This document shows positions 8,558-30,407 of a stretch of 64,000 nucleotides of DNA, piece after piece. The stretch is from the sequence record PQ657772.1. One strand, 5' to 3'. The translations under genes were made by a program, and so were the position numbers. The notes under the pieces are model-generated. The model ran no database searches and had not been told where the DNA came from. It worked only from the letters and a program-made list of their open reading frames with translations. Within the stretch, counting starts at the first letter, position 1; every line of letters starts with the position of its first letter.

Positions 8558-8587
8558 TACCGGCAATTGTAAAGATTTGTAAACTGC

Positions 8588-8824
8588 TTATACTGCAATC
8601 GCGTCCAGGCTATAATAATAATAAGTGCCGTATTGGTGTACTTTATTACCTTTTATTTCAGTACTGAATGAATCCGAACGGTTTGCATATGATGTTAATT
8701 TAAAGTACTTTGATTTGCTGATACGTTGCCATACACCACAGATCCGCTGTAAGTAAGTAGTTTTATTCGTGGTAGTATCTTTTACGGTTTTAACTTCAGT
8801 CATATACATATTAGTCATTTTCAT
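8588..8824 (-). CDS. early hypothetical protein
   Basis: GGAG RBS; promoter 8871-8898. Confidence 0.8.
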   Translation of the reverse strand: MKMTNMYMTEVKTVKDTTTNKTTYLQRICGVWQRISKSKYFKLTSYANRSDSFSTEIKGNKVHQYGTYYYYSLDAIAV

Positions 8825-8905
8825 TACTCCAGGTTATAGGCGGGAAGAGTTCCCGCTCTCGATGTAAAACATTATACGCCTTTAAACATAGTTTGCAAGT
8901 ACTTT

Positions 8906-9172
8906 TTATTCAAGTACTGCAATCTTTTTAGTACGGTACACGGTCACGCGGTTGCCCTTTCGGTCGAGCTTTATTTCTACCACTCGACGCGATACACTAT
9001 CGGGACTTTTTAAGGCCGCTAACCAGTACTGTAATGATCTGGCGGTACTACGCTTTACAATGGCCCAACGTTCACCACTTGCCGATCCCGCTCCCATATC
9101 TTTAAACGTTGCCCCGTCCTGGCGTGCGGCGATCCGAGCTTGTTCACGCGTCGCAAAATACTTAATATTCAT
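8906..9172 (-). CDS. basic hypothetical protein
   Basis: start moved to MNIKY (AGGG RBS). Confidence 0.75.
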   Translation of the reverse strand: MNIKYFATREQARIAARQDGATFKDMGAGSASGERWAIVKRSTARSLQYWLAALKSPDSVSRRVVEIKLDRKGNRVTVYRTKKIAVLE

Positions 9173-9258
9173 GCTGTTGCCCTTATCGTTGGTGTATGAA
9201 TAAAACACTATTATAAAGTACTATCGCAAAAAAATGATAGTACTTTAAATAAATTCTA

Positions 9259-9498
9259 TTACATTCCAACCATCGCCGCACGGATCGCAGTAGTGCTATA
9301 TTTGAATCCGTCCGGTGTTTTATCTTGTCCAGTCTGTTCTAAAAATAACATCATATGACGGGCCGCATCATTGCGATTAGTGTTGTCGTTAATAAAATCC
9401 AGGGCCAACCGATACAATCCCTCATCGTTATTAATCCACAGGCTTACATTCCAATGAGTTTTGTTTTTGTGACCTAAGAACATTTTTGATTTAGCCAT
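9259..9498 (-). CDS. hypothetical protein with WNVSLWINNDEGLY motif
   Basis: GAGGA RBS; promoter 9552-9579. Confidence 0.85.
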   Translation of the reverse strand: MAKSKMFLGHKNKTHWNVSLWINNDEGLYRLALDFINDNTNRNDAARHMMLFLEQTGQDKTPDGFKYSTTAIRAAMVGM

Positions 9499-9593
9499 TT
9501 TTTTTTAATCCTCTTATATAGTGGGGAACTATTCCCCACCTGATGTAAAACATTATACGCCATTAAACATAGTTTGCAAGTACTTTATTAAAC

Positions 9594-9956: not shown

Positions 9957-10070
9957 CGTTTTAATCTCTCTTAATGTGTAGCGGGAAGTGTTCCCGCTCT
10001 CGATGTAAAACATTATACGCTTTTATCAGTACGGTGCAAGTACTTTCTACAAATACTTTTAAAATAGTTT

Positions 10071-10167
10071 TCTTTCTATATAGGAGTACTATTATTCAGT
10101 ACTGAATCAATCCAGGGGAACTATCTTTCTATATAGGAGTACTATTATTCAGTACTGAATCAATCCA
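10071..10167. repeat. perfect 44-bp direct repeat
   Basis: 10071-10114 = 10124-10167, 9-bp spacer; two AGTACT per unit. Confidence 0.95.
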
Positions 10168-10184
10168 CTAAATCATCCCTATAC

Positions 10185-10292
10185 CCCGTAAAACGGCCTC
10201 AGACGCATTCTAACGCATTAATACACATAAGCTATACATTTGCACCATTCCAATCATTCCAGGGCTTTACAGGCCGTTTAAACGCGTTAAAT
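10185..10292. repeat. dispersed ACGCATTCTAACG-core repeat with imperfect inverted ends
   Basis: AACGGCCT...AGGCCGTT ends; core shared with 428-440 and 5047-5061. Confidence 0.6.
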
Positions 10293-10319
10293 TATTTTCA
10301 ATTATTTTGTTTTTAGGTA

Positions 10320-10400
10320 TTGACTTGATCCTGAAAAAGCGTATAATTACTACATAGACGCGAGAAAGCGGATACCCCAGGGGGTGGGAAGATCCGTCCA
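10320..10400 (+). ncRNA. promoter-driven ORF-less element, copy F
   Basis: TTGACT-16-TATAAT; GCGAGAAAGC hairpin; CCCCAGGGGGTGG; GATCCGTC shared with copy C. Confidence 0.45.
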
Positions 10401-10421
10401 AAATTCAAGATATAAAAAAAG

Positions 10422-10501
10422 GATACACTCCCGCACCCTAGCAGGTAAACGCACTTTCTCAGTACTGAAATATAGTACCATAGTCCGGCCCAGGATAGCA
10501 A
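10422..10501 (-). ncRNA. promoter-driven ORF-less element, copy G (convergent with F)
   Basis: TTGCTA-18-TACTAT; GTACTGAGAAAGTGC hairpin; AGGGTGCGGGAGTGTATC shared with copy E. Confidence 0.4.
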
Positions 10502-10535
10502 GCAAATTAATTAAAACTTTTTTGCTTCCAGGGTA

Positions 10536-10612
10536 TTGCTTTATTTTTTCAGTACTGTATAATAGTTCCATCAAGTCGAGAAAGACTCAAGCCCACCGGG
10601 TGCATAGTTACG
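10536..10612 (+). ncRNA. promoter-driven ORF-less element, copy H
   Basis: TTGCTT-16-TATAAT; CATCAAGTCGAGAAAGACTCAAGCCCACCGGGTGC. Confidence 0.55.
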
Positions 10613-10786
10613 CCCAAAATTCAGTACTGAAAAAATTTTTAAAAATATCCGGCCAGGCCGTTGACATTGCCCCCAGTTTATAAGATAATGATTCCAGATT
10701 CAGAAAAATCTAACACCAGATACTGCGGGGAAACTATCCCCACGCGGTAGGGGAACTATTGGAAAAAACAAAATAAAATTTTGATT

Positions 10787-10898
10787 TAGCCGTCTATACT
10801 TCCAGACGTGTAACCATCTAGCCGTTTAGCCGTCCAAACGTCTAGCCATCCAGCCATCCAGAAATCTAGCCGTTTAGCCGTTTAGATGGATAGCCATC
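10787..10898. repeat. degenerate 8-bp-period tandem array (YAGCCRTY)
   Basis: units at 10787, 10811, 10819, 10827, 10843, 10851, 10867, 10875, 10891, all in 8-bp register. Confidence 0.85.
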
Positions 10899-11300
10899 TT
10901 TACTTCCAGACTTCTGGAGGGCTAGACATATCTACGCCCAAAATCCATCCAGGGTAACTACACCCAAAATCCGTCAGTACTATACCATAGATCTATCTTT
11001 TGAAAGGGAGTATTCAGTACTGCCATCATAGCCCTCACTATGTTACCCTAGGAGGATGAAGACCATCATGTAGTACTGAATACTGTTAGAGGGAATCCAC
11101 CAGCTTGTGCTGGTGGCATAATGCTTTAGATTAAAATCAGTACTGACACCATTCTGTTAATATCAGTACTGTTATTACGATTTTCATATGAGGTTCAAAA
11201 AGATGTACCACCACAGGAGGAACTATCTTTTCTGTACTGTCTCACGACAGGAGGTAGAGTAAATGAATTGTTCGCAGCAACTCATCACCCTATGTAGAAC

Positions 11301-11328
11301 ATTATACAGTACTGAATCATAAAGTCAA
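11301..11328 (-). promoter_or_regulatory. sigma70 promoter firing into ORF-free DNA
   Basis: TTGACT-16-TATAAT with CAGTACTG abutting the -10 box. Confidence 0.7.
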
Positions 11329-11801
11329 TAACTTTCTTTCATCTTTCAGTACTGATATTCTTGAGAACTACCCGACTACAAACATCATTATATCCCACAA
11401 ATCATAAACGTCCCAACGTAAATTTCAACTTTCGAAGATCCAACTTTTATTTCATAGGTACTCCAAAATTTTTAGGATCGAGATTTAGGATGGAGTACTA
11501 ACCAACTTTTTGCTGGAGCCTCAAGGGGTAATGGAATTTTACCCCGAAGGGTAAAGGGGTAATTGAAATTAAGGTGAAAGTAATAATTCAGTACTAATCA
11601 TTGCGTGATTACTTTTGATTACATTTGATGTAATTTGCAAAATGGAAAAGGAGCTTGGAAACTACAAAGTACGGCAGACTTCCTCTGCCTACTTAGTGGG
11701 ATATCGCCACCTTCAGTACTGAATACTTTTAGGGCAGTACTGCTACGTTCTTGATTAAACGTGCACATTCCTGTACTCTATTACACTCTGGTACTCAATA
11801 C

Positions 11802-11872
11802 TGATCACTACAATGATTATAAATGATTACTTAAATGTTTATATATGATTACTTATGACTACATATGATTAC
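11802..11872. repeat. helically phased TGATTAC repeats
   Basis: exact or variant copies at 11802, 11814, 11824, 11846, 11856, 11866; also 11606 and 11616. Confidence 0.75.
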
Positions 11873-11995
11873 GGGGTTTAGCCTGGGGAGAATCCTAGTG
11901 ATCGCATTTGTCCAGGCTGAATTTTAACAATTCTTCTAATTGTTAAAGCCTGTCCAATGCTTTCCCTGCGGAGCTTCCCCTGTCTATATGTTGAA

Positions 11996-12202
11996 TTACT
12001 TCCTATATATAAGCATTAACATATAGTAGTACTGATTATGCTGTACATTCTCTTTAATATTATAAGGGTCTATAGCAATCTCGGTACATCTGTTAAATGC
12101 ATATCTATTAAATGCCAGTACTATTATAGATCTAATCCATGCTTGGTCAGTCGGTGGTAGTTTACTTATATAGTACTCTTTATAGTTTTTTATGTTCTGC
12201 AT
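11996..12202 (-). CDS. ~60-aa tandem paralog (KE[YF]Y...LxLI family) 1/21
   Basis: family N- and C-terminal motifs. Confidence 0.8.
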   Translation of the reverse strand: MQNIKNYKEYYISKLPPTDQAWIRSIIVLAFNRYAFNRCTEIAIDPYNIKENVQHNQYYYMLMLIYRK

Positions 12203-12213
12203 AGTATACCTTA

Positions 12214-12405
12214 TTATTTCAAAGTACCATATAGTACTCTTAATAGGAAGTAGTACGTATTAGAGATATCATTACTAGTTAAAACAATCTTTGTACACAT
12301 ATTAAATTCGTATTGAGTCATTGCCAGGGGGATTAAATTGTTAACCCATGCTTGTTCGTTTTCTTTTAGTTTACTTATATAGAAATCTTTATGTTCTTTA
12401 TTCAT
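12214..12405 (-). CDS. ~60-aa tandem paralog 2/21
   Basis: family motifs; close to copy 1. Confidence 0.8.
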   Translation of the reverse strand: MNKEHKDFYISKLKENEQAWVNNLIPLAMTQYEFNMCTKIVLTSNDISNTYYFLLRVLYGTLK

Positions 12406-12607
12406 ATAGGAATAGTATACCTATGATGCCGGAGTACATATTAGTACTGTTATTATTGTCGTTTGCGTTTAAAGTCATTTGAATACAATTATTGTAGCAT
12501 ACTCTGCCGAAATAAGTATCAGTACTTAAAGGTGCTGTAGTCCTTAGAAACATTTGTTCTGTGGGGCTGAGGTGTTTGGAATAGAATTCTTTATGTTCTT
12601 TATTCAT
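12398..12607 (-). CDS. ~60-aa tandem paralog 3/21
   Basis: family motifs; close to copy 6. Confidence 0.8.
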   Translation of the reverse strand: MNKEHKEFYSKHLSPTEQMFLRTTAPLSTDTYFGRVCYNNCIQMTLNANDNNNSTNMYSGIIGILFLYE

Positions 12608-12612
12608 ATTAG

Positions 12613-12798
12613 TTAGTGTCTGTATATAAGTAATAGTAAGAATACGTACTGCACCTGTTCATCTTTAGTATTGAGTACTGTACGTATTGCGTCATGGAAC
12701 AAGAATATAGTACTTGGGTCATTAGAATTTAAGGGGTTTACGGGGACGGCGTGTTTGTAGTTCCCTTTAACAAATTGTATATAGTATTCTCTATGCAT
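12613..12798 (-). CDS. ~60-aa tandem paralog 4/21
   Basis: family motifs. Confidence 0.8.
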   Translation of the reverse strand: MHREYYIQFVKGNYKHAVPVNPLNSNDPSTIFLFHDAIRTVLNTKDEQVQYVFLLLLIYRH

Positions 12799-12799
12799 A

Positions 12800-12988
12800 T
12801 CAGTACCTATATATTAGGGCGAGAATGTAGTACAGTTTATATGTATTATAATCTGGGTTGATAGCACATAGTGTGTGGTAGTGGAATTGTTTGGTATTTT
12901 TCTTATCCTTGATATCTATTGGGTTTAGTGGTATAAGCATTTGGGAGTTTAGTTCCAGATGGTTTAAGTAGAATTCTTTGTTATTCAT
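12800..12988 (-). CDS. ~60-aa tandem paralog 5/21
   Basis: family motifs. Confidence 0.8.
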   Translation of the reverse strand: MNNKEFYLNHLELNSQMLIPLNPIDIKDKKNTKQFHYHTLCAINPDYNTYKLYYILALIYRY

Positions 12989-13187
12989 AGAAGAATATTA
13001 GTCCCATTACGCCTGAGTACTGAATATTTTTGTTATTGTTTTCTAAAGCTTCTAGAGTAATACGTATACAATTATTAAAGCAATCTCTGGCGTGTGGTGA
13101 ATCTAAACGTAAAGGTGATACACTCCTTAGAAACATTTGTTCTGATGCACTGAGGTGTTTGGTGTAAAATTCTTTCTGTTCGTTCAT
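12981..13187 (-). CDS. ~60-aa tandem paralog 6/21
   Basis: family motifs. Confidence 0.8.
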   Translation of the reverse strand: MNEQKEFYTKHLSASEQMFLRSVSPLRLDSPHARDCFNNCIRITLEALENNNKNIQYSGVMGLIFFYE

Positions 13188-13197
13188 ATTGGCCTCT

Positions 13198-13386
13198 TTA
13201 GTACACGAAAGCTAGGTACAGTGTATGATACAGTACTCGATGATAGCTATCAAAATCTAGTATACATGCTTTAGTGCACATAGTAAAGTACACTTTATCG
13301 TTTTGAGCATTGATACCGCGAGGTTTATCTAATAGATTAGTACTGAGGTACATTGGGAAATATTTTGTGTAGTATTCTTTATGCAT
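13198..13386 (-). CDS. ~60-aa tandem paralog 7/21
   Basis: start moved to MHKEYY. Confidence 0.8.
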   Translation of the reverse strand: MHKEYYTKYFPMYLSTNLLDKPRGINAQNDKVYFTMCTKACILDFDSYHRVLYHTLYLAFVY

Positions 13387-13387
13387 A

Positions 13388-13576
13388 TTAGTACCTGAAT
13401 ATAAGTAGGATAGTGTTATATAATTGGTCATAGCTACTACTATTTTCTATACTGCGTTCTATGCAATTATTGAATCCCAGTACTGCCAAATCGTTATCCA
13501 GGGGGACTTTATATCTGGCGTAGTGTTCAAATATACTGGGGAGAAATTGTGTGTAGTATTCTTTGTGGTTGTTCAT
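13388..13576 (-). CDS. ~60-aa tandem paralog 8/21
   Basis: family motifs. Confidence 0.8.
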   Translation of the reverse strand: MNNHKEYYTQFLPSIFEHYARYKVPLDNDLAVLGFNNCIERSIENSSSYDQLYNTILLIFRY

Positions 13577-13577
13577 A

Positions 13578-13769
13578 TTAGTACTTATATATTAGTAAAA
13601 GGATGTGATACAGTACTCGATTATAGTCTTCAATATATATCGAGGATTTAGTGCACTTAATGAAATAGTCTTTTTCGTAGTCTTTTTCTATACTCAATTG
13701 TTTTGTTGGTACAAGGTGTTGGAGATACATTGGGAGTTTCTCTATGTAGTATTCTTTGTGGTTATTCAT
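13578..13769 (-). CDS. ~60-aa tandem paralog 9/21
   Basis: family motifs; close to copy 7. Confidence 0.8.
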   Translation of the reverse strand: MNNHKEYYIEKLPMYLQHLVPTKQLSIEKDYEKDYFIKCTKSSIYIEDYNRVLYHILLLIYKY

Positions 13770-13777
13770 ATTATGTG

Positions 13778-13957
13778 TTATTTCGTGAAAACAAGGGTTA
13801 GTACTGCATAGTACAAGTCATACGTATCTTTAGGGTTAATAGCACCTTTAATACATTCTTTCATTACTTCATTATAGATAATTTTAGTACTGAATGTATT
13901 GGATGTTACTATATCGGAATTAAGATACGAGAGGTAGAATTCTTTATAAGTATTCAT
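13778..13957 (-). CDS. ~60-aa tandem paralog 10/21
   Basis: hand-translated MNTYKEFYLSYL...YYAVLTLVFTK (59 aa, missing from ORF track). Confidence 0.8.
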   Translation of the reverse strand: MNTYKEFYLSYLNSDIVTSNTFSTKIIYNEVMKECIKGAINPKDTYDLYYAVLTLVFTK

Positions 13958-13958
13958 A

Positions 13959-14141
13959 TTAGTACCTGAATGTTAGCATTACTACGTAGTACAGCATATA
14001 TGGATTATCATCGTATATGAGCGTGTACTTAGTACATTGTTGGAACATTATCTTTGCGTGATCTTTGATACCCAATGCAACGTTTGGTATATGGTGTTGT
14101 AGATGCATTGGGATTTTATCTTTGTAGTATTCTTTATACAT
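13959..14141 (-). CDS. ~60-aa tandem paralog 11/21
   Basis: start moved to MYKEYY. Confidence 0.8.
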   Translation of the reverse strand: MYKEYYKDKIPMHLQHHIPNVALGIKDHAKIMFQQCTKYTLIYDDNPYMLYYVVMLTFRY

Positions 14142-14793
14142 AGTTTGAAATATACGTAATGAGGTGATGAAATTTCTTATCAGTACTGATAAGTTCCTGT
14201 ACATGTTTTGTTAGTTTGTACGCGTTTTTATAGAGTCCTGGATTATCGATTACAGTACTGTACATGAATTCTTCTTCCTCGGATAATTCTTTGTGTTCTA
14301 GTTCTTTGAGGAATTGCAGTACTGTATCAGTTTCGTTAGTACGTTGCTTTTGGAAGAAGTGCATGTTATCGTGTATTTTTTCTGAACCCATGCAGTACAT
14401 ATCGCCGATTTGGAATTGTGCAGTACTGATATCATGGGTGCTATTACAATTCCCGAAGAAGTATACATTCCCGAAAGATAGAATTATAGTGCACGGGATA
14501 TTATCCATGTGTATATAGATAGATGCATTCTTTAGTGCTTTTGTGCTGGTATTAGTACTCAATACTTTTAAATCAGTATTATAGATATTAATAAAAGCAA
14601 GAGCTATATTATTTTTCTTCAAGTACGATTTGAGGTTCTTAGATACGAGAACATTTCTGGATTTTTTCTTTTTATTTCGTTTCTTTAGTACATTTGGGTC
14701 GTAAGTATATACTGGTGTAAAAGATTCTGCTTGAATACTGTTGAGGTACTTAAAGTGCTTATGGTATTGTTTGCTGTGTGCATTAAGTTTCAT
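14134..14793 (-). CDS. hypothetical protein, dispersed EExF(Q/M)xS(L/I/T)(I/V) family
   Basis: basic N-terminus; LSEEEEFMYSTVID motif shared with 31638, 46573, 52544. Confidence 0.8.
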   Translation of the reverse strand: MKLNAHSKQYHKHFKYLNSIQAESFTPVYTYDPNVLKKRNKKKKSRNVLVSKNLKSYLKKNNIALAFINIYNTDLKVLSTNTSTKALKNASIYIHMDNIPCTIILSFGNVYFFGNCNSTHDISTAQFQIGDMYCMGSEKIHDNMHFFQKQRTNETDTVLQFLKELEHKELSEEEEFMYSTVIDNPGLYKNAYKLTKHVQELISTDKKFHHLITYISNYV

Positions 14794-14804
14794 TTGGTTT
14801 TCCT

Positions 14805-14984
14805 TTATACAGATGCGAGTGCGAGGATTTCCCTGAAGGGATTATCTTTTGTTAGTGCGTGATGAATGCAGCTATTGAGATTAATATTTTTAGTACTGTT
14901 AGTTGCCAGGTTGTAGTACTTCACGAAGGTGTCGTACATGAAACGGTCTTTAATGCTTATGTGTTCTATATAGTATTCTTGCAT
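14805..14984 (-). CDS. ~60-aa tandem paralog 12/21
   Basis: hand-translated MQEYYIEHI...FREILALASV (59 aa). Confidence 0.8.
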   Translation of the reverse strand: MQEYYIEHISIKDRFMYDTFVKYYNLATNSTKNINLNSCIHHALTKDNPFREILALASV

Positions 14985-14992
14985 ATTATTCC

Positions 14993-15181
14993 TTACATAG
15001 AGATGAGTTTCAGTACATCAATATACATATAACGTTCAGATGACAGTACACGGGTAGTGATAATCTCAATCGATATATTTTTAATTCCATGTGCAGATGA
15101 TTGATGGTGCTGAATAAATGAGTTGTGCATACTTTGTTCTATGTGGTTTAGTTTATTGAAGTAGTACTCAAAAGTGTTCAT
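14993..15181 (-). CDS. ~60-aa tandem paralog 13/21
   Basis: family motifs; close to copy 15. Confidence 0.8.
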   Translation of the reverse strand: MNTFEYYFNKLNHIEQSMHNSFIQHHQSSAHGIKNISIEIITTRVLSSERYMYIDVLKLISM

Positions 15182-15188
15182 GTCTACC

Positions 15189-15368
15189 TTAGATTAAGAT
15201 TAGTTTAAGTACTTCTCTGTACGTGTACTTTTCGTTTTGTGCTTCTACTGTACATGATAGTAGGTATCGTTTTTTATCTCTTTTGTTCCCGACTGTGTAG
15301 TACCTTTGGAATTTATTATAGTTGTATCTATCTTTGTGCTGGAGGTTATAGATATAGAATTCTTGCAT
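15189..15368 (-). CDS. ~60-aa tandem paralog 14/21
   Basis: hand-translated MQEFYIYNL...YTYREVLKLILI (59 aa). Confidence 0.8.
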   Translation of the reverse strand: MQEFYIYNLQHKDRYNYNKFQRYYTVGNKRDKKRYLLSCTVEAQNEKYTYREVLKLILI

Positions 15369-15376
15369 AGAGTACC

Positions 15377-15562
15377 TTATATTGCTATCAGTTTGAGTAC
15401 TTCAATATATGTGCGGTACTCTGCTTTAATTAAATTTGTACACACTGTAAGGGAATTTCTTTGTATAAGTTTATTGCCGCTTTTATACGCATTTCTCCAC
15501 ACATAGAGATGAGATCTTTCAGGCATAGATAGTTTATTTGTATAGTACTCAAATGTATTCAT
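15377..15562 (-). CDS. ~60-aa tandem paralog 15/21
   Basis: family motifs. Confidence 0.8.
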   Translation of the reverse strand: MNTFEYYTNKLSMPERSHLYVWRNAYKSGNKLIQRNSLTVCTNLIKAEYRTYIEVLKLIAI

Positions 15563-15570
15563 ATATTACC

Positions 15571-15753
15571 TCAAATAGAGATTAGTTTAAGTACTTCTCT
15601 GTATGTGTACTTTTCGTTTTGTGCATCTCTTGTGCTTGTATATAGGTATCCTCGACGATATTTGTTGCTCCCGTTCTTGTAGTTGAATTCGAACTTATTG
15701 TAGATGAATCTATCGCCAGGCTGTAATTTACTTAAGTACAATTCAATGCTCAT
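15571..15753 (-). CDS. ~60-aa tandem paralog 16/21
   Basis: start moved to MSIELY; close to copy 14. Confidence 0.8.
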   Translation of the reverse strand: MSIELYLSKLQPGDRFIYNKFEFNYKNGSNKYRRGYLYTSTRDAQNEKYTYREVLKLISI

Positions 15754-15763
15754 AGTATTCTCT

Positions 15764-15949
15764 TTACATATCAATAAGTTTCAGTACTGCTCTGTACGTG
15801 TACTTAGTTGTTAGTGCTTCTTTTATAGCAATACAGAAGTAATGTTGTTTGTCTCTTATACTACCGCGTTTGTAGTACCATACATTGGAGTTGTGGGTGT
15901 ACTTGTCCCTGTCGGATAGATTTAGGTAATAGTATAATATATGATTCAT
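15764..15949 (-). CDS. ~60-aa tandem paralog 17/21
   Basis: family motifs. Confidence 0.8.
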   Translation of the reverse strand: MNHILYYYLNLSDRDKYTHNSNVWYYKRGSIRDKQHYFCIAIKEALTTKYTYRAVLKLIDM

Positions 15950-16158
15950 GGTAATGTAATTAGCCTTATTATGTTAAAGTACTCGGTCCCTGGTACACCT
16001 TGTAGAATATTATCAACTACATTTTCTTGGTGCAGGATTAATACATTCGGTGCGGTTCTTTTAAGGTTTTTTAAAGTACTGTATTCTTGTTTAAGGATGA
16101 ACTGTACATCTTTAGGGAGAATATCTAAGTAGTACTGGTGTATGTTCATAGTTTTCAT
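15946..16158 (-). CDS. ~60-aa tandem paralog 18/21
   Basis: family motifs; close to copy 20. Confidence 0.8.
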   Translation of the reverse strand: MKTMNIHQYYLDILPKDVQFILKQEYSTLKNLKRTAPNVLILHQENVVDNILQGVPGTEYFNIIRLITLP

Positions 16159-16169
16159 ATAGTACTCTT

Positions 16170-16355
16170 TTAGAACTTAAAGATGAGGTTCATGATAGAT
16201 AAGTACTTAGTTTCAGGAAATTGATGTTCTATTGCATAACGTGTCTCCAGTCTGAAGTCAAATTTATAAAAGGGACTATTCATATCCATAGGTTCATTGG
16301 GAAATGAATCTCTGTATTGTTTGTGCAGCTTACTACAGTAGAATTCTTTATACAT
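16170..16355 (-). CDS. ~60-aa tandem paralog 19/21
   Basis: family motifs. Confidence 0.8.
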   Translation of the reverse strand: MYKEFYCSKLHKQYRDSFPNEPMDMNSPFYKFDFRLETRYAIEHQFPETKYLSIMNLIFKF

Positions 16356-16356
16356 A

Positions 16357-16569
16357 TTAGTGCTCGATTAAAAGGGTTAGGATGTAATAGTATTGCATAC
16401 TTTCTACCCCTTGTACAGCATTTCTTATTTTATTATTCCTGTACGAGTTCAAGAGTTTAGGACAATGTTTGAAGTTTATATAATTATTTTGTGTATACAG
16501 TAGGCTTTCTCGTAGACCTTTTGTTGGTAGTGCATCAATGTAGTACTGTTCAATGTTCATAGTGTTCAT
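16357..16569 (-). CDS. ~60-aa tandem paralog 20/21
   Basis: family motifs. Confidence 0.8.
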   Translation of the reverse strand: MNTMNIEQYYIDALPTKGLRESLLYTQNNYINFKHCPKLLNSYRNNKIRNAVQGVESMQYYYILTLLIEH

Positions 16570-16793
16570 AGAGCTACCAGTACTAAGATTTTTGATAATT
16601 GTTTGTTTCTATCCCCGCAGATGTTGTTGTGTAAAATGCTCACTACAAGGGTATCAAGTGCATTGTTCAGCATAAGGTTACATCCAGTACTGTTATGTGT
16701 TTTTAGCTCAATTAGCCACGAACTATCCGCGAGAAACTTCGCGTACTCTAGTTCATTTAGAGTATTAATGTAGTACTTAAGTGCATTTGTCAT
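16566..16793 (-). CDS. ~60-aa tandem paralog 21/21 (divergent, first in operon)
   Basis: KYYINTL...ILVLVAL; AAGGAG RBS. Confidence 0.7.
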   Translation of the reverse strand: MTNALKYYINTLNELEYAKFLADSSWLIELKTHNSTGCNLMLNNALDTLVVSILHNNICGDRNKQLSKILVLVAL

Positions 16794-16818
16794 GTGTAGT
16801 TCTCCTTATATTCCTTCT

Positions 16819-16847
16819 ATAGTACACCAGTACTGAAAGGGTGTCAA
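16819..16847 (-). promoter_or_regulatory. sigma70 promoter of the small-paralog operon
   Basis: TTGACA-17-TACTAT with AGTACT in the spacer. Confidence 0.8.
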
Positions 16848-16864
16848 GGGTTTTCTTTAGGAGG

Positions 16865-16896
16865 TAAATATGATATAATGAATAAAGGAGGGAAAT
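16865..16896 (+). promoter_or_regulatory. TAAATA-N3-TATAAT promoter plus RBS of propeller gene 1
   Basis: TAAATAtgaTATAATGAATAAAGGAGG. Confidence 0.7.
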
Positions 16897-18045
16897 ATGT
16901 TACCTTTTGTTAGAATGTTTGATTATGGGAATGAAGCACCTACCAACTCTGGGCGTTTTAAAATATATTCCAGTGATTCTATGTATCTTCATGATACTTA
17001 TACTGACAAGTTGTATGCATCTTCTGCGACGAATTGGGGTACTGGTACAGGTGTAGCATCGAGTAAATTTATTCTTTGTGCGGAGAATGTTAAACGAGTT
17101 CTATTGGAAGATAACAGTAGTGATTGTCAATTGTATGAAGAGAAAGGTACTGGAAAAGTTTTTATCACTGGTAACACGAAGGCATTCACTGGTGTAACTG
17201 ATAGAAAAACTTTGTGGACGGACTGTACTACGTGGATAACATCAAGTGGTATTAATGTTTCTGATATAAAATACATGAGTAGTTTTTATGATATGAAGGT
17301 GAATTTGATAACAAACGATGGTACATTGTATTGTTGTGGAGCTAACAATATATCGAACATATCATCATTTGGTGATGGCACAAACATTAATTCTTTTAAC
17401 ACATTCAAAAGAGTAGATACTATAACTTCGGTTAAAAAGGCAGTTGGTAACATTTATTTGCGAGAAGATAATACTTTATGGGGTTGTGGTTTTAACTATT
17501 ACTACCAGTTGGGCACGGGTAATCAAACTTCTATTACTGGGGTGACGATGATTTCTTCGGATGTTATAGATTTTAATGTAAGTTATCAGAGTACATTTTT
17601 TATCAAATCGGATAATAATTTGTACGCTTGTGGTAAACAGTTCGGTGCACAATATGGGAACGAATTTGGTACAGGTGGTACTTCCTCTTCTACTGATATA
17701 CAATATAAAACTCCCACATTATTGAGTGCAGGTGTTTATAGTTTATATACTTGTGTTGGTAACATGGCATCACATATAGTTAAAGGTGATGAAGTACTTT
17801 ATGCATCTGGAAGCAACTCGTCTGGTCAATTAGGTGTTGGTAATAATAATAATCAGTACTCCTATACTCCTTCATATACTTCGTTTAATACCTCTTGTAA
17901 TTTGGTACGCACCCCATCTGGTTCACTTATACTTACTGATACTGGAAAATTATATTATTGTGGCCTTGCAATAGTAGTAATGGGTGGTATTTCTGGACAG
18001 AACGTTCTTAATTATACAGAAGTCGATATGTCATTTTTGCAGTAA
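16897..18045 (+). CDS. RCC1/BLIP-II-like beta-propeller protein 1/13
   Basis: MLPFVRMFDYGN tag; LWGCGFNYYYQLGTG and LYASGSNSSGQLGVG repeats. Confidence 0.85.
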   Translation: MLPFVRMFDYGNEAPTNSGRFKIYSSDSMYLHDTYTDKLYASSATNWGTGTGVASSKFILCAENVKRVLLEDNSSDCQLYEEKGTGKVFITGNTKAFTGVTDRKTLWTDCTTWITSSGINVSDIKYMSSFYDMKVNLITNDGTLYCCGANNISNISSFGDGTNINSFNTFKRVDTITSVKKAVGNIYLREDNTLWGCGFNYYYQLGTGNQTSITGVTMISSDVIDFNVSYQSTFFIKSDNNLYACGKQFGAQYGNEFGTGGTSSSTDIQYKTPTLLSAGVYSLYTCVGNMASHIVKGDEVLYASGSNSSGQLGVGNNNNQYSYTPSYTSFNTSCNLVRTPSGSLILTDTGKLYYCGLAIVVMGGISGQNVLNYTEVDMSFLQ

Positions 18046-18053
18046 ATTAATAT

Positions 18054-18112
18054 GCCAGTACTTGATACTGGCTTTTTTGATTAAATATAGTATAATGAAT
18101 AAAGGAGGAAAT
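18054..18112 (+). repeat. terminator-promoter-RBS junction cassette
   Basis: GCCAGTA-CTTGA-TACTGGC + T-tract + TAAATATAGTATAATGAATAAAGGAGG. Confidence 0.85.
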
Positions 18113-19222
18113 ATGTTACCTTTTGTAAGAATGGTTAAGTACGGGAATATTGCACCAGTACCGAAAAAAATAAAGAAAGTTATAGCAGGATATGATAATT
18201 TATATGTACTATATGGTGATGGTTCGCTATATGGTTGTGGAATCAATAACTATCAACAGTTAAATATTAATGGAACTGCTACACAAAATAATTGGGTACT
18301 AATTACCAATGGTGTTAGTAATGCATGGGCTGGTGGATACAATATTTTATATTTGAAAGAAGATAAATTTATAATGCACGGAACTAATGTCTCATTAGGT
18401 TTAGGAAATACTACAATTCCATTAGGTGGAGTAGATGTAACTTCTTCATTCCCAGATATCTCTAATATTAAAATGATATCCATTGGTTTTGATTCAATGC
18501 ACTATGTTAGTGCTGATGGTACAACTGTATATGGAAGAGGTATGAACACAAATGGTTCTGTTGGTTCAGGTAGTACTTACTCACAGAGTACTTTCACTTC
18601 AGTACTGAATAATGGAACTAATCAGGTTATTGATATATTTGGTAACGTTAATAATACAGTGCTTCTAACATCGAATGGTGAGCTTCGAGCATGTGGGACA
18701 AGTGCTTATGGTTCTATAGGAAATGAAACTGGTAAGTGGACATCGTTTGGTTTAAAATTATCTGGCACTAAAATAATGGGTGGTAATGGGTATAGTACGC
18801 TTGCATATACAAATTCGGGAATGTACCACTCAGGGTGGCAGTTAAATGGGGAACTAGGAAATGGTTTAGATACTAACGTACAGGTATATCCATTTCAATT
18901 TAACTCTAAAACGATAGATAGCAAGATAGATAAAATTGCCAAATCATCATCTGGGTCATATGTTAACATGTACTCAACAACAGAAGGAAAGATATATACG
19001 ACAGGTTCGTTTGGTAAAAACGGGTCAACTACTGCATTGAATTTGTTCACCAATACATTAACACTTATAAATTACAATCCAGATACCGCCTCGTTGTATA
19101 CGTGCACAAACTTCAGTGTTGTGTATGATGGTAATGAAACTATTGCTGTAAGTGGTAGTCCTACATATGTACCAGGGGGCGTTGCCGCTAATAGATGGAC
19201 TACAATTCCATTACCCAAGTAA
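18113..19222 (+). CDS. RCC1-like beta-propeller protein 2/13
   Basis: start moved to MLPF; LYGCGINNYQQL and SGWQLNGELGNG repeats. Confidence 0.85.
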   Translation: MLPFVRMVKYGNIAPVPKKIKKVIAGYDNLYVLYGDGSLYGCGINNYQQLNINGTATQNNWVLITNGVSNAWAGGYNILYLKEDKFIMHGTNVSLGLGNTTIPLGGVDVTSSFPDISNIKMISIGFDSMHYVSADGTTVYGRGMNTNGSVGSGSTYSQSTFTSVLNNGTNQVIDIFGNVNNTVLLTSNGELRACGTSAYGSIGNETGKWTSFGLKLSGTKIMGGNGYSTLAYTNSGMYHSGWQLNGELGNGLDTNVQVYPFQFNSKTIDSKIDKIAKSSSGSYVNMYSTTEGKIYTTGSFGKNGSTTALNLFTNTLTLINYNPDTASLYTCTNFSVVYDGNETIAVSGSPTYVPGGVAANRWTTIPLPK

Positions 19223-19228
19223 TACTAT

Positions 19229-19293
19229 GCCAGTACTTGAGTACTGGCTTTTCTTTTTGATTAAATATAGTATAATGAATAAAGGAGGGAAAT
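19229..19293 (+). repeat. terminator-promoter-RBS junction cassette
   Basis: GCCAGTACT-TG-AGTACTGGC + T-tract + TAAATA-N3-TATAAT. Confidence 0.85.
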
Positions 19294-20415
19294 ATGTTAC
19301 CTTTTGTTAGAATGTTTGATTATGGAAATGAAGTACCTGATCCTAGTTCGGGATTTCGAATAATAAGTACAGGAGACGCATTACTATTAATTACTAAGAG
19401 TGGTGATTTGTGGGTGCGTGGTTATAACCGTTATGGCAAGTTAGGTATAGGTAATAACACCACTACCTATGTACTTGATTGGACGAAGGTTAGAAGTGAT
19501 GTGAAGTTTGCGTGTGGTAGTGGATTGGTAACAGTTATCTTTACTAAGGATAATCGTATATTGTACTGTGGTGACAAATGGTTTGAAACGGGTGGTGTTG
19601 GTAGTGCACAGATTTTCACATGGACAGATGTTACGCATCAATTTGGGGTAGTAGATTTGAGTACTGTAAGGGATATGAAAATATCTTATTACGCGATTGG
19701 GTTAGTTACTACTAATAATCAATTATACGCTAAGGGATTTGATAATAACCTATCATTTGGTGGGGTTACTAATAAGGCGACTGCTGTGTTTATTGCGAAT
19801 AATGTACAAGAGTTGTATACGAGTTTAGTTAGTACTATCTACGTTGATACAAGTGGTATATTACATCGTTGTGGCATGAGTGATAACGGTTCGTTGGGTA
19901 ATAATGGTAGTTTAACTTCGTATCTAAGTTATTCACAGCCTGGTATGACGATTAAGGACATTGGAATGATGACTACGAACACTGGGTTATTATATACTGA
20001 TTCTAGTGCACGAACGAGATATTTTATTGCTGGACAGAACTTGAATAAACAGATGGGTAATGCGGCGGCTGCGAGTGCCATTACGAGTACTTACACAGAG
20101 CTTTCTGGTAGTGTTGATAAGTTTTCTTCTTTATGGGAGAATGATGGGATATTGATGACATTTGCTGTGGGTAAGAACACTAATCAGTTATTTTATGCTG
20201 GGACGAATACTTTTCATGCGAGTGGTGGTGAATCTTCATATGCGGATACATATGAGTTAGTTCCGATGGTGTTTAATGACATACAGGAAGTGTTATGTGC
20301 ACAGCGTTTATCGGTGGTACATGATTCTACGAAGTGGTATTACTGTGGTGATGCTAATTCAATGTATGGTTTACCGGACGTAAGTACTTTTACTGAGTTA
20401 CCGTTGCCCTTTTAA
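19294..20415 (+). CDS. RCC1-like beta-propeller protein 3/13
   Basis: tag; LWVRGYNRYGKLGIG. Confidence 0.85.
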   Translation: MLPFVRMFDYGNEVPDPSSGFRIISTGDALLLITKSGDLWVRGYNRYGKLGIGNNTTTYVLDWTKVRSDVKFACGSGLVTVIFTKDNRILYCGDKWFETGGVGSAQIFTWTDVTHQFGVVDLSTVRDMKISYYAIGLVTTNNQLYAKGFDNNLSFGGVTNKATAVFIANNVQELYTSLVSTIYVDTSGILHRCGMSDNGSLGNNGSLTSYLSYSQPGMTIKDIGMMTTNTGLLYTDSSARTRYFIAGQNLNKQMGNAAAASAITSTYTELSGSVDKFSSLWENDGILMTFAVGKNTNQLFYAGTNTFHASGGESSYADTYELVPMVFNDIQEVLCAQRLSVVHDSTKWYYCGDANSMYGLPDVSTFTELPLPF

Positions 20416-20421
20416 TAATAG

Positions 20422-20488
20422 GTCAGTACTGAAATATGTACTGGTATTTTTTGTAAATACTGTATGATTTAATTACGGAGATTTTATT
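20422..20488 (+). repeat. variant terminator-promoter junction
   Basis: CAGTAC..GTACTG hairpin; TAAATActgTATGAT; GGAG RBS. Confidence 0.75.
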
Positions 20489-21670
20489 ATGTTACCTTTT
20501 GTTAGAATGTTTGATTATGGGAACGTCGTTGAGCCACCTGTGGGTACACGTTATACCTGTAGTGACTATAGTGCGACTTATAGTTTAATAAAGGATGGTG
20601 TGTTATATGTATCTGGGATGAATAACTATTATCAGTTAGGTAATAACACTAACGTAACACGTTACAACGAGTGGTTAAAAGTTCCAGAGACTGATAGTGT
20701 TAAGTTTTGTAGTACTGGTTATAGTCAGACAATGTATCTGACTAACAATGGTAGGATAATGATAGCAGGTGAAGATCCTACTTCCAGTGCGACGGCGGTA
20801 AGTGTAAAGGTTTGGACGGATATAACTTCTAGATTTCGTGCAGTTGATACTAAAAAGATTGTTTATATTTCAATAGAACGTTATGGTGTAATGATGATCA
20901 TGGAAGATGGTTCAGTATGGGCGTGTGGTGTTGATAATACTGGTTGGAGTGGACAAGGGAGTAAGACTGTTGGTTTCTTTACTTTCAGACAAATATACAC
21001 CGGAAGTGCAGGAAGTGCAGTTGCTTGTACTGCTGGTACTGGCACTTCGAGGATTCTATTAGTTGATGGTACAATATTGTCCTCTGGTACTAATACATAT
21101 CATCAATGTAATGCTAGTACTGATCTGGCTGTTCTAACATACACTGAATCATTCCCTGGGGTTGATCCTTCATTGATATATCAAGTCAAGATGTGTAATA
21201 ACAACTGTATTATATTCTTGAGTGATAAGAGATATTATGGTACTGGTTGGGGGAGTTTTGGTGCTTTGGGTGATGGTGATATTTCGGGTTCGAATAATAA
21301 ATTCTATGCTGGTACATTGTCAGTTGCTCCTAAAAACATGCGTGCTTATATGTCGTATCTATGTAGTTCTGCTGGGGATTCTAGTATGTACATAGGCGAT
21401 GATAATTTCATATACACCTGCGGTTATCGTGGGAGGAACTTAATAAATGCCACTACAGATATTGGGACGTTCACGAAATGCATTCAAAGTGCACAAGGAT
21501 ACAAGAATGGACTTATATATAGTGGGAATTATTGTGCTGTAGTTTTTGATCCAGATTTGGGTTCAGGAATGACATATGCGGTTTCATCACCAAAAGTGAA
21601 TGCACCAGCACCACAGGCGAGTGTTCCAACATTGGGTATGAGTTCGTTACAAGCTATTATTTTACCATAA
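20489..21670 (+). CDS. RCC1-like beta-propeller protein 4/13
   Basis: tag; LYVSGMNNYYQLGN. Confidence 0.85.
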   Translation: MLPFVRMFDYGNVVEPPVGTRYTCSDYSATYSLIKDGVLYVSGMNNYYQLGNNTNVTRYNEWLKVPETDSVKFCSTGYSQTMYLTNNGRIMIAGEDPTSSATAVSVKVWTDITSRFRAVDTKKIVYISIERYGVMMIMEDGSVWACGVDNTGWSGQGSKTVGFFTFRQIYTGSAGSAVACTAGTGTSRILLVDGTILSSGTNTYHQCNASTDLAVLTYTESFPGVDPSLIYQVKMCNNNCIIFLSDKRYYGTGWGSFGALGDGDISGSNNKFYAGTLSVAPKNMRAYMSYLCSSAGDSSMYIGDDNFIYTCGYRGRNLINATTDIGTFTKCIQSAQGYKNGLIYSGNYCAVVFDPDLGSGMTYAVSSPKVNAPAPQASVPTLGMSSLQAIILP

Positions 21671-21675
21671 CATTA

Positions 21676-21745
21676 TACCAGTACTGAAATACGTACTGGT
21701 ATTTTTTTGTAAATACATTATAATTATTATATGGAGATTTTAGTT
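21676..21745 (+). repeat. variant terminator-promoter junction
   Basis: TACCAGTAC..GTACTGGTA; TAAATAcatTATAAT. Confidence 0.75.
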
Positions 21746-22876
21746 ATGTTACCTTTTGTTAGAATGTTTGATTATGGGAATACAGTGGCTGCTCCCACTG
21801 GTATAAAGGATTTCCAAGCAAATGGAAGCCACTGTATGGCACTAACATATAGTGGTGAGATGTGGGCTTATGGTACAAGTACAAGTGGATCAATGGGAAC
21901 CGGATTCACGGTGGGTGCTGCTGATAAGGGTTGGTACAAGTCTAACATTAGTAATGTTAAATCATTCAGTTCTAATATGCAGACTAGCACAGTGGCTTTG
22001 ACAAATGATGATAGAGTGCTAGTTTGTGGCTCAACTAGATTTGACAAATTCAGTACTCCAGATATTGCATCATCTAACCTTGATTGGTTGGATGTTACTG
22101 ATCATATTCCACAGGAAGTTATTGATGCTGGGATGAAGCAAGTTATTAACCACGCATATTATGTTGCCATTTTTACTGAAAACAATCTATTATATAGTGT
22201 GGCATTATCTTTGGGTAATACTAGTACTATAATAGATAGAACATGGCGAAGAAATACATTTGGTGATATACAAGTTGAACGTGTTGTTTCGTTGACACAA
22301 ACCCCAAGTGGTCCTTTGTGTATAGTTCAAGATGCAGACGGATACCAGTATGGTATTGGATATAATGGTAATAAGATTATTGATAATACTTCCACTAATT
22401 CATATTCTGTATATACCAAAATGGGTACACTTCCTTACAATGAATTTGCCATATCGAATAGCGGGAAATTCAGTTCAGCGGTATTATCAGACGGGAGAAG
22501 TGTTTATAGTGGTACATTTCCAAAGTCATTCAATAATAGTTTTGGTTCATTTTTGAAAGTTGGTGCGGTATCAGATACTGTGTTTGGTTTAGATGCAAAA
22601 AATATGCGTGGTCAATATGGTCAAAATCAATTACCAATTGCGGCGGCTGATAACAATGCAAGTAATGGCGTTGTTAACCTTCGTAATGTTCCAGCGGGAA
22701 CACAAACGAAAGACATTCGATTTATATGCGGAAATGATGTAAAGAACGTTTATATCATATACACAAATGAAGACGGCATTAGCTCATTTTATGGATTGGG
22801 ACCAAACTTTGATCAAAATTCCTCAGCATATGCACAATTCGTCAAAGTGGATTTGCCAGGGGCATTATTAAATTAA
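21746..22876 (+). CDS. RCC1-like beta-propeller protein 5/13
   Basis: start moved to MLPF; MWAYGTSTSGSMGTG. Confidence 0.8.
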   Translation: MLPFVRMFDYGNTVAAPTGIKDFQANGSHCMALTYSGEMWAYGTSTSGSMGTGFTVGAADKGWYKSNISNVKSFSSNMQTSTVALTNDDRVLVCGSTRFDKFSTPDIASSNLDWLDVTDHIPQEVIDAGMKQVINHAYYVAIFTENNLLYSVALSLGNTSTIIDRTWRRNTFGDIQVERVVSLTQTPSGPLCIVQDADGYQYGIGYNGNKIIDNTSTNSYSVYTKMGTLPYNEFAISNSGKFSSAVLSDGRSVYSGTFPKSFNNSFGSFLKVGAVSDTVFGLDAKNMRGQYGQNQLPIAAADNNASNGVVNLRNVPAGTQTKDIRFICGNDVKNVYIIYTNEDGISSFYGLGPNFDQNSSAYAQFVKVDLPGALLN

Positions 22877-22886
22877 GGAGAGAAAT

Positions 22887-23996
22887 ATGTTACCTTTTGT
22901 TAGATTGTTTGATTATGGGAATATCACACCTGGTCCTAAAAATATAATTAAAGTTGGTGCTTCTACACAGGGTCAATTCTTATTGACAGATTCACATGAT
23001 TTATATTACATAGGTAGAAATCAAGGTGGTGAATCTGGAAATGGAAATACCAACACAGTATCCTCATGGATATTAGTAAGTACAGATGTTTCTAATTTTT
23101 TCGTGGGTGATCGTACACTTGTTATTATTAAAAATGATAATACGATATGGTCATCAGGTCAAACGTACTGGTTCACATCTTCCACAACTACTTCTTACAG
23201 TACTGTATTAGTTGATAGAACCAGTTGGTTTACCAATGCCATACCAGTAAGTGAAATTGCTGATATAGTATGTTCGTATGGTTTAATATTTGTACTTAGC
23301 ACTAGTTCAGTACTCTATGGTGCAGGGGCTAATGGATATCGTGGTGCTTTAGGTATTGGTTCATCATCAATTTACACATTAACTCAATGTGCTACTAATG
23401 TGCGTAAAGTAATGACGAATGCAAATGACAGTATGTATATTACATTAGATAATAAGTTATATAGTTCTGGGTGGAATGACCGTGGATTACATGGCACAGG
23501 GAACAGAACACAAGTTAACATTTGGGGACTGCGTAGTTCTGGTGTAATAGATGCAGCTATTGGTGGACATACACTCAATTACTATAATGGTACATCATAT
23601 TTCACATGTGGTACAACTCCAAACTTTCTTAGTTCAGATTCAACTACATTCAAAGCAGTTCCTGTAAGTACTTTACCTAATAATTCACCTTTGTTTATGA
23701 CAAATTCAGAGGCAACAAGCACGGCTACGCAAATTATATTAACTAGTGCATATCAGAAAGGTATTGGGGGAAACCGTGGTTTGGGATTAAACAATTCTCA
23801 AACGGGTGCTATCTATAGTGCTGCTAATTTACAATTACCTGTAGAAGTTAGTGAGATTAGTGATGTTGCTTTTAGTGACGGATTAACATCATTATTAACC
23901 AAAGACGGGAATGTATATAGTACTGGATCGTATTACGCCATTCCAGGTGCAAGTGCAGATGTTGCAGTCTTTACTAAAATTGATTTACCAAAATAA
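22887..23996 (+). CDS. RCC1-like beta-propeller protein 6/13
   Basis: tag; LYGAGANGYRGALGIG; no own promoter (coupled to gene 5). Confidence 0.85.
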   Translation: MLPFVRLFDYGNITPGPKNIIKVGASTQGQFLLTDSHDLYYIGRNQGGESGNGNTNTVSSWILVSTDVSNFFVGDRTLVIIKNDNTIWSSGQTYWFTSSTTTSYSTVLVDRTSWFTNAIPVSEIADIVCSYGLIFVLSTSSVLYGAGANGYRGALGIGSSSIYTLTQCATNVRKVMTNANDSMYITLDNKLYSSGWNDRGLHGTGNRTQVNIWGLRSSGVIDAAIGGHTLNYYNGTSYFTCGTTPNFLSSDSTTFKAVPVSTLPNNSPLFMTNSEATSTATQIILTSAYQKGIGGNRGLGLNNSQTGAIYSAANLQLPVEVSEISDVAFSDGLTSLLTKDGNVYSTGSYYAIPGASADVAVFTKIDLPK

Positions 23997-24002
23997 CATA
24001 AT

Positions 24003-25246: not shown

Positions 25247-25250
25247 ACAC

Positions 25251-26471: not shown

Positions 26472-26477
26472 AATTAA

Positions 26478-27738: not shown

Positions 27739-27745
27739 CAATAAT

Positions 27746-30401: not shown

Positions 30402-30407
30402 TATAGT

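Follow-up and report, generated by a model that had tools for sequence, protein, structure and literature searches.

A lineage-restricted tandem array of small paralogous genes in Asteriusvirus jumbo phages, with the dynamics of an old birth-and-death gene family

We analysed a 64,000-nucleotide (nt) window of DNA, corresponding to nt 1-64000 of Escherichia phage EC.P1 (PQ657772.1; the array region is 100% identical and the coordinates are the same), and focused on a tandem array of small genes on its minus strand, at 11996-16793. EC.P1 is an Asteriusvirus, that is, a jumbo phage of the 121Q/PBECO4 type, and the array region is also matched by 35 other Escherichia coli and Salmonella jumbo phages of about 310-386 kb; where a full taxonomy line is given, as for 121Q and slurp01, it places the phage in Asteriusvirus. 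Twenty copies in the array form one protein family, as demonstrated by leave-one-out searches with a hidden Markov model (HMM) and by profile-profile comparison of its subfamilies. The family is restricted to the Asteriusvirus lineage, and its sequence divergence shows that the array is an old gene family shaped by birth and death of its members, not a recent gene accordion.

A family of twenty small coding genes

The array comprises 21 open reading frames (ORFs) of 59-75 amino acids (aa) each, located exactly where they had been placed by an earlier note on the window, made from the sequence alone; among them are three 59-aa ORFs (13778-13957, 14805-14984, and 15189-15368, minus strand) that are absent from the ORF track available for that note. 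The spacing between adjoining ORFs ranges from -8 to +11 nt, with overlaps of 4-8 nt, and at many of the starts the final codons and stop codon of the upstream gene supply a partial Shine-Dalgarno sequence. For copies 7, 11, and 16, internal ATGs (ends 13386, 14141, and 15753) are the likelier starts and match the annotation in relatives. Public annotation of the region is patchy, covering 9 of the 21 small ORFs in the EC.P1 record and 9 of the 18 members in phage phAPEC6.

With a family HMM, all 21 ORFs scored E ≤ 4e-11, whereas each of the ~740 remaining six-frame segments of the window had E ≥ 0.12. For a non-circular test of membership, each orthogroup was left out of the HMM in turn. Under this scheme, 18 copies scored 18-62 bits and copies 18 and 20 scored 13-18 bits, with the top background at 6-11 bits, whereas copy 21 (16566-16793, minus strand, 75 aa) reached 8-9.5 bits against a background of 7. 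Comparison of copy 21 with the other subfamilies using hhalign gave non-significant matches as well (E = 0.002-0.055). Because both scores of copy 21 are weak, 20 members are demonstrated rather than the 21 paralogs counted previously. Copy 21 is nevertheless a constant part of the locus, always being the first gene after the promoter and present in all 10 closely related genomes described below.

The 20 members fall into three subfamilies: A (copies 1-11 and 19), B (copies 12-17), and C (copies 18 and 20). With profiles enriched by sequences from relatives, hhalign matched subfamily A to B over 53 columns (94% probability, E = 1.6e-7) and A to C (92% probability, E = 5e-7). In an alignment of one representative from each of 27 orthogroups, Tyr8 is invariant and L12, F36, C39/T40, Y53, [IV]56, L57, L59, and I60 are conserved columns; the shared N- and C-terminal motifs picked out in the earlier note are therefore real. 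Subfamily A is characterized by KE[YF]Y at the N-terminus and LL-x-IYRY at the C-terminus, subfamily B by EYY and Y-x-Y-x-EVLKLI, respectively, and subfamily C by the N-terminus MNI-x-QYY. The closest pairs are those that had been singled out by eye, namely, 3/6 (56% aa identity), 14/16 (54%), 7/9 (44%), 13/15 (39%), and 18/20 (37%).

We compared ten closer genomes (including EC.P1) and the distant phage JNE01, eleven in total. The summed ratio of non-synonymous to synonymous polymorphism (pN/pS) among orthologs is 0.37, the frames stay open across the eleven genomes, in which the indels are cassette-sized, and the fold is predicted with confidence; thus, the small ORFs are real coding genes. 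The patchy annotation of the EC.P1 record, the very small size of the proteins, and their lack of homologs of known function might suggest remnants without function, or ORFs that arose by chance in AT-rich DNA, but this explanation is contradicted by the selection on the genes and the integrity of their frames, by the clear HMM separation from all other frames, by the confident fold prediction, and by the presence of ribosome-binding sites and tight spacing, and we give it hardly any credence.

We modeled copy 9 with AlphaFold2, using the 21 paralogs as the sole alignment, and obtained a mean predicted local distance difference test score (pLDDT) of 91. The model contains four helices (residues 3-9, 14-17, 30-45, and 49-62), so that the protein is predicted to be a small and compact helical bundle. 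Conservation is seen at aromatic or hydrophobic residues of the N-terminal helix and the last two helices. Within orthogroups, the density of recent amino acid changes in the loop (residues 18-30) is about double that in the two long helices. The small proteins are soluble, with a negative grand average of hydropathy in 20 of the 21, and none contains a stretch long enough for a transmembrane segment. Their isoelectric points (pI) span 5.5-9.6 and their net charges -2 to +6, copies 14-17 being basic (pI 9.4-9.6); these values do not indicate the strongly acidic surface of DNA-mimicking anti-restriction proteins of the Ocr/ArdA type. Tyrosine is twice as frequent as in the other proteins of the window. 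The coding strand of the array is G-poor: at 12001-16800, the plus-strand GC skew is +0.16 to +0.18 despite the minus-strand orientation of the genes, the other minus-strand genes of the window showing a skew of the opposite sign. This skew fits the composition of the small proteins, which are low in Gly, Val, Ala, Asp, and Glu and high in Tyr, Asn, His, Leu, and Ile.

Reading from the promoter along the minus strand, copy 21 is followed by copy 20 (16357-16569, 70 aa), copy 19 (16170-16355, 61 aa), and copy 18 (15946-16158, 70 aa). Copy 19 is of the subfamily A type, scores 50.6 bits when left out of the model, and is represented at this position in other genomes by the allele 'xb'; copy 18 is present in 6 of the 10 genomes. 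Then comes block B (14805-15949), consisting of copies 12-17 (59-62 aa each) at 14805-14984, 14993-15181, 15189-15368, 15377-15562, 15571-15753, and 15764-15949. Block A (11996-14141) comprises copies 1-11 (59-69 aa each; leave-one-out scores of 29-62 bits), with copies 1-6 at 11996-12202, 12214-12405, 12398-12607, 12613-12798, 12800-12988, and 12981-13187, and copies 7-11 at 13198-13386, 13388-13576, 13578-13769, 13778-13957, and 13959-14141. The tight packing agrees with the tandem array as first described, but the array is not unbroken: an unrelated gene for a 219-aa protein (14134-14793, minus strand; phrog_29152), which had gone unmentioned, splits it between the two blocks.

Operon organization and turnover of the array

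The array is preceded by a sigma70-type promoter (TTGACA-17-TACTAT; 16819-16847, minus strand), the spacer of which contains the palindrome CAGTACTG. Both hexamers are identical in 10 Asteriusvirus genomes, and a strong Shine-Dalgarno sequence (AAGGAG) stands before the first start. These elements lie in a 103-bp divergent intergenic region (16794-16896) between the small-gene array and the first of an array of RCC1-like beta-propeller genes, so the promoter and the back-to-back transcription of the two arrays from one region are both as had been proposed. Unlike the genes on either side, this region is 84% nt identical even to JNE01. Promoter-like sites are no more frequent across the region than in shuffled sequence (34 versus 35.7), and the promoter call is therefore founded on position and conservation rather than on consensus match. 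Within the array, we found no terminator-like sites; a weak promoter-like site of uncertain function lies in copy 7 (TTGATA-17-TATCAT, with AGTACTG in the spacer; 13225-13253, minus strand; 10 of 12 consensus positions). Together, the conserved promoter and Shine-Dalgarno sequence, the gaps of at most 11 nt, and the lack of internal terminator-like sites establish the locus as an operon-like unit.

The promoter sequence points to early transcription of the array by the host RNA polymerase. The authors who described phage Sharanji noted a sigma factor gene in this phage group and suggested that its product acts together with the host RNA polymerase (PMC11895373). PA5oct, a related jumbo phage, is dependent on host RNA polymerase; its early genes are for the most part uncharacterized and lie in the terminal repeat, and the promoters of this phage are of the TTGAC/TATAATA type (PMC7318152). 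The single raw RNA-seq run linked to a phage-holding sample contained zero reads on the array stretch, and contigs from a wastewater metatranscriptome cover fragments of the array, although RNA and DNA origin are inseparable there.

The number of members varies from 15 to 22 across the eleven genomes. Eleven orthogroups are common to all ten closer genomes; those that vary among the ten are copies 2, 3, 10, 11, 13-16, 18, and 19, along with six groups missing from EC.P1. Copies 13-16 are missing from 121Q, G17, phAPEC6, and SD-15_S21, and slurp01 retains copy 13. In EC.P1, WPEC5, and BF17, copy 6 is part of block A, whereas the other seven genomes have it near the promoter. Even genomes with 98-99% identity over the region differ by clean indels of cassette size (187-208 nt and 578 nt): WPEC5 lacks 190 nt spanning the boundary of copies 10 and 11, BF17 carries an additional 187-nt cassette, and 121Q lacks 578 nt, about three cassettes. 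Thus, the family is neither fixed nor invariant among relatives. Furthermore, several Asteriusvirus variants occur side by side in a mixed public sequencing run that carries an RNA label but probably represents DNA. Copy 6 (12979-13197) is removed by one contig joint of this run, with break points no more than 10 nt from each end of the gene, and a second joint jumps back 1023 nt (12398-13420); from these joints, we conclude that array variants coexist in one sample.

At the DNA level, the most similar copies are 3/6 (72% nt identity) and 14/16 (71%), which form direct repeats, and repeats of 25-61 nt occur at gene boundaries, where conserved C-terminal and N-terminal codons meet. Cassettes could be gained and lost by unequal recombination at these conserved gene ends, with the boundary repeats as the likely substrate. 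The distant JNE01 has the same layout, that is, a leader gene, five members, a gene for a 224-aa protein, and then ten members. The JNE01 members are 30-57% identical to their best EC.P1 counterparts, and several copies have recognizable counterparts. Between these two phages, four proteins of the left flank are 82-100% identical and the adjacent 2 kb of non-coding DNA is 86% identical at the nt level, whereas the 219-aa protein is only 39% and the RCC1-like proteins are 24-39% identical. Because both arrays have diverged while the left flank is conserved, the small-gene and propeller arrays form one hypervariable island with sharp borders.

The suggestion in the earlier note that the array is a gene accordion holds insofar as copy number changes by whole units, but not with respect to recent amplification, given that the best pairs share 71-72% of their nt. 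Considering this divergence, the 11 orthogroups shared by ten genomes, and the counterparts in JNE01, the duplications are old, and most orthogroups predate the split of the genus lineages. The poxvirus K3L gene is a known accordion. A preprint reports that, under selection by toxIN, phage T4 amplified a gene for counter-defence (bioRxiv 10.1101/2022.04.14.488369). The present array resembles such accordions in that the copy number of tandem units shifts by recombination, close relatives differing by whole units; however, accordions are recent and consist of near-identical copies, whereas the best pair here shares 72% nt and 56% aa identity. A different comparison is offered by the MGF110, MGF360, and MGF505 families of African swine fever virus, which are linked to host range and immune evasion. 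In these families, too, old and divergent paralogs stand in tandem in variable parts of the genome, and isolates differ by members gained or lost, but the realm, the host, and the proteins differ and there is no sequence or fold relationship, so the analogy extends to genome dynamics only.

Distribution and possible function

In tblastn searches, the small-protein family and the 219-aa gene were confined to one shared set of 36 phage records. Among 5.8 billion proteins, a word-indexed search yielded 59, and a profile search run exhaustively against 1.84 billion cluster representatives yielded 32 clusters, all consisting of small proteins (39-84 aa), with every inspected sequence being of the same type. 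Nine small copies were compared with PHROG profiles: copies 1, 3, 5, 9, and 10 matched positions 1-62 of phrog_11711 (E = 3e-19, 1e-9, 2e-9, 1e-23, and 3e-6, respectively), and copies 14, 15, 20, and 21 had no match. Thus, phrog_11711, of unknown function, is the same family under a database label and covers subfamily A only. A Pfam scan of the nine small copies and the 219-aa ORF produced nothing significant, as did a profile search of PDB sequences, and the PADLOC HMMs gave only single-member matches with E ≥ 0.0027. When the copy 9 model was searched against PDB, BFVD, AlphaFold DB clusters, the wide VIA-align set, and the ESM Atlas, only its own family was matched, the remaining hits being generic helical hairpins with Z ≤ 4.4. 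In these searches, neither a fold nor a sequence relative was found outside Asteriusvirus. Two candidate relationships were considered and rejected. The best PDB profile match was the designed tetratricopeptide repeat protein CTPR390 (E = 0.066), probably a coincidence of composition and motif, and the ESM Atlas match to putAbiC (PF16872), suggested by a protein language model, despite a score of 0.91, had a recognition value of 1662, below the 2300 mark, with no Pfam match at E ≤ 1. The published descriptions of the Asteriusviruses fEgEco12, Sharanji, and phAPEC6 mention neither paralogs nor tandem arrays.

Given the host-type promoter and the absence of export signals, an early, intracellular, host-directed set of proteins is the most economical explanation of the array. 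Furthermore, a conserved hydrophobic framework with a variable loop and surfaces, together with many co-expressed paralogs in a variable island, is what would be expected of a panel of binders directed against variable targets. We therefore favor, tentatively and at somewhat less than even confidence, the possibility that the small proteins bind host factors inside the cell early in infection, for takeover or counter-defence. Under this scenario, the proteins would be made early within the infected cell and the paralogs would act as a panel of small binders, each directed at a different or allelic host factor, such as a takeover target or a defence protein; turnover of the panel would then follow variation in the repertoire of its E. 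coli and Salmonella hosts. Several observations weigh against it. Selection is purifying overall, and pN/pS approaches 1 only in copies 9 and 13 and in group xb, with small counts, so positive selection is undemonstrated. The family has no homolog of known function and no structural match in PDB, AlphaFold DB, BFVD, or the ESM Atlas; the early timing is inferred from promoter type alone; and, to our knowledge, large paralog arrays are rare among anti-defence proteins. Finally, the linkage and the shared hypervariability with the RCC1-like array would fit a function tied to the virion proteins of that array equally well.

The array is of a familiar kind, comparable to variable multigene families of large viruses or to clusters of small early phage genes, whereas its scale, the orphan mini-fold, and the sharply bordered hypervariable island are new. 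A cluster of small early genes is found in the terminal repeat of PA5oct (PMC7318152). The host-takeover genes of T4, T5, and SPO1 form clusters as well. Like the array, these comprise closely packed small genes without assigned functions behind host-type promoters, which presumably redirect the host. Such clusters consist mostly of unrelated genes, whereas the array repeats one domain about 20 times, with its early timing inferred. A more specific and less likely possibility, to which we assign only a modest chance, is that one miniature helical scaffold underlies a natural library of proteins, in which each of ~20 co-expressed paralogs would neutralize a different host immunity or takeover target by means of its variable loop and helix surfaces, the repertoire being re-assorted as cassettes are shuffled between co-infecting Asteriusviruses; if so, the array would be the largest tandem family of counter-defence paralogs known in a phage. 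Jumbo phages carry hundreds of unannotated genes, and here ~5 kb are devoted to ~20 versions of one orphan mini-domain. This region is among the fastest to change in a genome that is conserved elsewhere, and only about half of its genes are annotated in public records. Should the proteins bind host factors, they would provide a ready panel of small natural inhibitors and could help to explain differences in host range among therapeutic Asteriusvirus isolates, and if they are paired with the RCC1-like virion proteins, they would provide a clue to how that array works. Either way, the locus is a clean setting in which to study how phage genes evolve by birth and death.

The main rival to a host-directed function, which we consider rather unlikely, is that the small proteins work with the RCC1-like propeller paralogs, as adaptors, assembly factors, or inhibitors, and that the two arrays co-diversify as a module. 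Both arrays are transcribed outward from the conserved 103-bp region, both are hypervariable between EC.P1 and JNE01 next to a conserved left flank, and both are multi-copy (~13 propeller and ~20 small genes); moreover, gp549 and gp551, two orthologs of the RCC1-like proteins, were detected as virion proteins of phAPEC6 in a published mass spectrometry analysis. However, the copy numbers do not correspond one to one, co-variation is expected from linkage alone, no annotated small member was found in the phAPEC6 virions, and the consensus sigma70 promoter of the small genes is of a kind typical of early expression, virion proteins generally being made late. Still less probable, in our assessment, is a role in conflict between phages, through superinfection exclusion or interference, with turnover driven by competition among co-occurring Asteriusviruses. 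The restriction of the family to this genus and the public run that holds several array variants, including the copy 6 deletion and the rearranged joint, are compatible with it, but the membrane segments or signal peptides frequent in exclusion proteins are absent.

The earlier note had also linked the small proteins to the internal head proteins of T4, proposing a T4-like capsid-targeting N-terminus, possible packaging, and ejection into the host against restriction or other defences, in the manner of IPI*. The T4 targeting peptide is MKTYQEFIAE, and copy 10 resembles it, starting with MNTYKEFY. The targeting determinants of the T4 peptide are residues 4 and 7, with processing at residues 8 and 10, where the prohead protease cuts [LI]xE (PMC9026906). 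A Tyr at position 4 and a Phe at position 7 occur in register in only 1 of the 21 copies, namely, copy 10, and [LI]xE is not conserved, being present within the first 25 residues of 4 of the 21 copies, at differing positions; moreover, the N-terminal motif is modeled as a helix within a confident compact domain rather than as a detachable tag. The small proteins would fit through the portal, and phAPEC6 has a T4-type prohead core scaffold and protease (gp227c) as well as an inner-body rod, the proteins of which are unassigned. Yet gp540c-gp548c, the nine members annotated in phAPEC6 out of 18, are all absent from the 62 virion proteins identified by mass spectrometry, which used whole-lane slices and detected a 4.66-kDa protein along with the two propeller orthologs, and the promoter is of the sigma70 type, not the late type. 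Searches for sequence or fold likeness to IPI*, IPII, and IPIII using Foldseek, VIA-align, and a profile search gave no PDB match, the model being all-helical. The link to T4 capsid targeting is thus not borne out, packaging is unsupported by the virion data for the annotated half of the members, and we regard this alternative as very improbable. What remains is a broader resemblance to the T4 internal protein locus (IPI, IPII, and IPIII), the products of which are likewise small, non-essential, poorly conserved, and interpreted as products of an arms race, IPI* being an inhibitor of a type IV restriction enzyme (PMC9026906). Otherwise, the systems differ: the T4 proteins are packaged in ~360 copies, carry a cleaved targeting peptide of 10-19 residues, and include the alpha/beta fold of IPI, whereas the array encodes ~20 paralogs of one all-helical domain, with no conserved cleavage site, a host-type sigma70 promoter, and no annotated member detected in phAPEC6 virions.

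Neighbouring regions and promoter motifs

The 219-aa gene within the array has homologs in Asteriusvirus only. It is truncated or split in the Salmonella phages SD-2_S15 (137 aa; OR699181.1) and SD-6_S16 (120 aa; OR699182.1) and seems dispensable at least in these two; its AlphaFold model was unusable (pLDDT 39). The gene is single-copy in each of the 36 records, and a search with the left flank for a second copy of the array, as would result from terminal-repeat duplication, gave many short repeated matches and no clear second copy. There is thus no support for a location of the array inside a duplicated terminal repeat.

On the other side of the divergent region, ~13 RCC1-like beta-propeller paralogs occupy the plus strand at 16897-33490, the first two sharing the N-terminus MLPFVRM.

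The window contains at least three classes of near-consensus sigma70 promoters with conserved spacers. Class I (TTGACA-N8-(C)AGTACTG-TATAAT) is found, for example, at 732-705, 1308-1281, 39619-39592, and 54945-54918; class II (TTGCAA-actatgtttaaaggcg-TATAAT) at 8898-8871 and 9579-9552; and class III (TTGACT-tcggtcagccctttttgc-TATAAT) at 36862-36833, 42068-42039, and 49204-49175. These may be temporal or regulatory classes. Class I promoters precede other small-gene clusters of the window, and with the palindrome in its spacer, the promoter of the array resembles the class I form TTGACA-N8-CAGTACTG-TATAAT. The palindrome is the commonest 8-mer of the window, with 57 occurrences in 64 kb against ~1 expected, and is densest at 10097-11742; AGTACT occurs 253 times. 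Some of the palindromes lie in promoter spacers beside the -10 element and many others are intragenic, including four in the 219-aa ORF. CAGTACTG may serve as a promoter element specific to the phage, or it may be bound by a protein.

To the left of the array, the 2 kb at 10014-11995 contain no convincing ORF in any relative and are conserved in JNE01 up to the array border. Twelve copies of CAGTACTG lie in this stretch, which also has tandem repeats (10787-10885), terminator-like hairpins, and, on each of the two strands, strong promoter-like sites. Rfam returned nothing for it, nor any match elsewhere in the window, and a scan of the window for tRNAs found none; the stretch could harbor non-coding RNAs or be a replication or regulatory region. 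Further left, the genes at 8585-9592 (phrog_5293, phrog_8127, and phrog_871/DUF7249) are 84-87% nt identical to those of the ~146-kb E. coli and Shigella phages vB_EcoM_ESCO32, vB_EcoM_ZYD, and SF1-1, a likeness that suggests exchange between unrelated phage groups.

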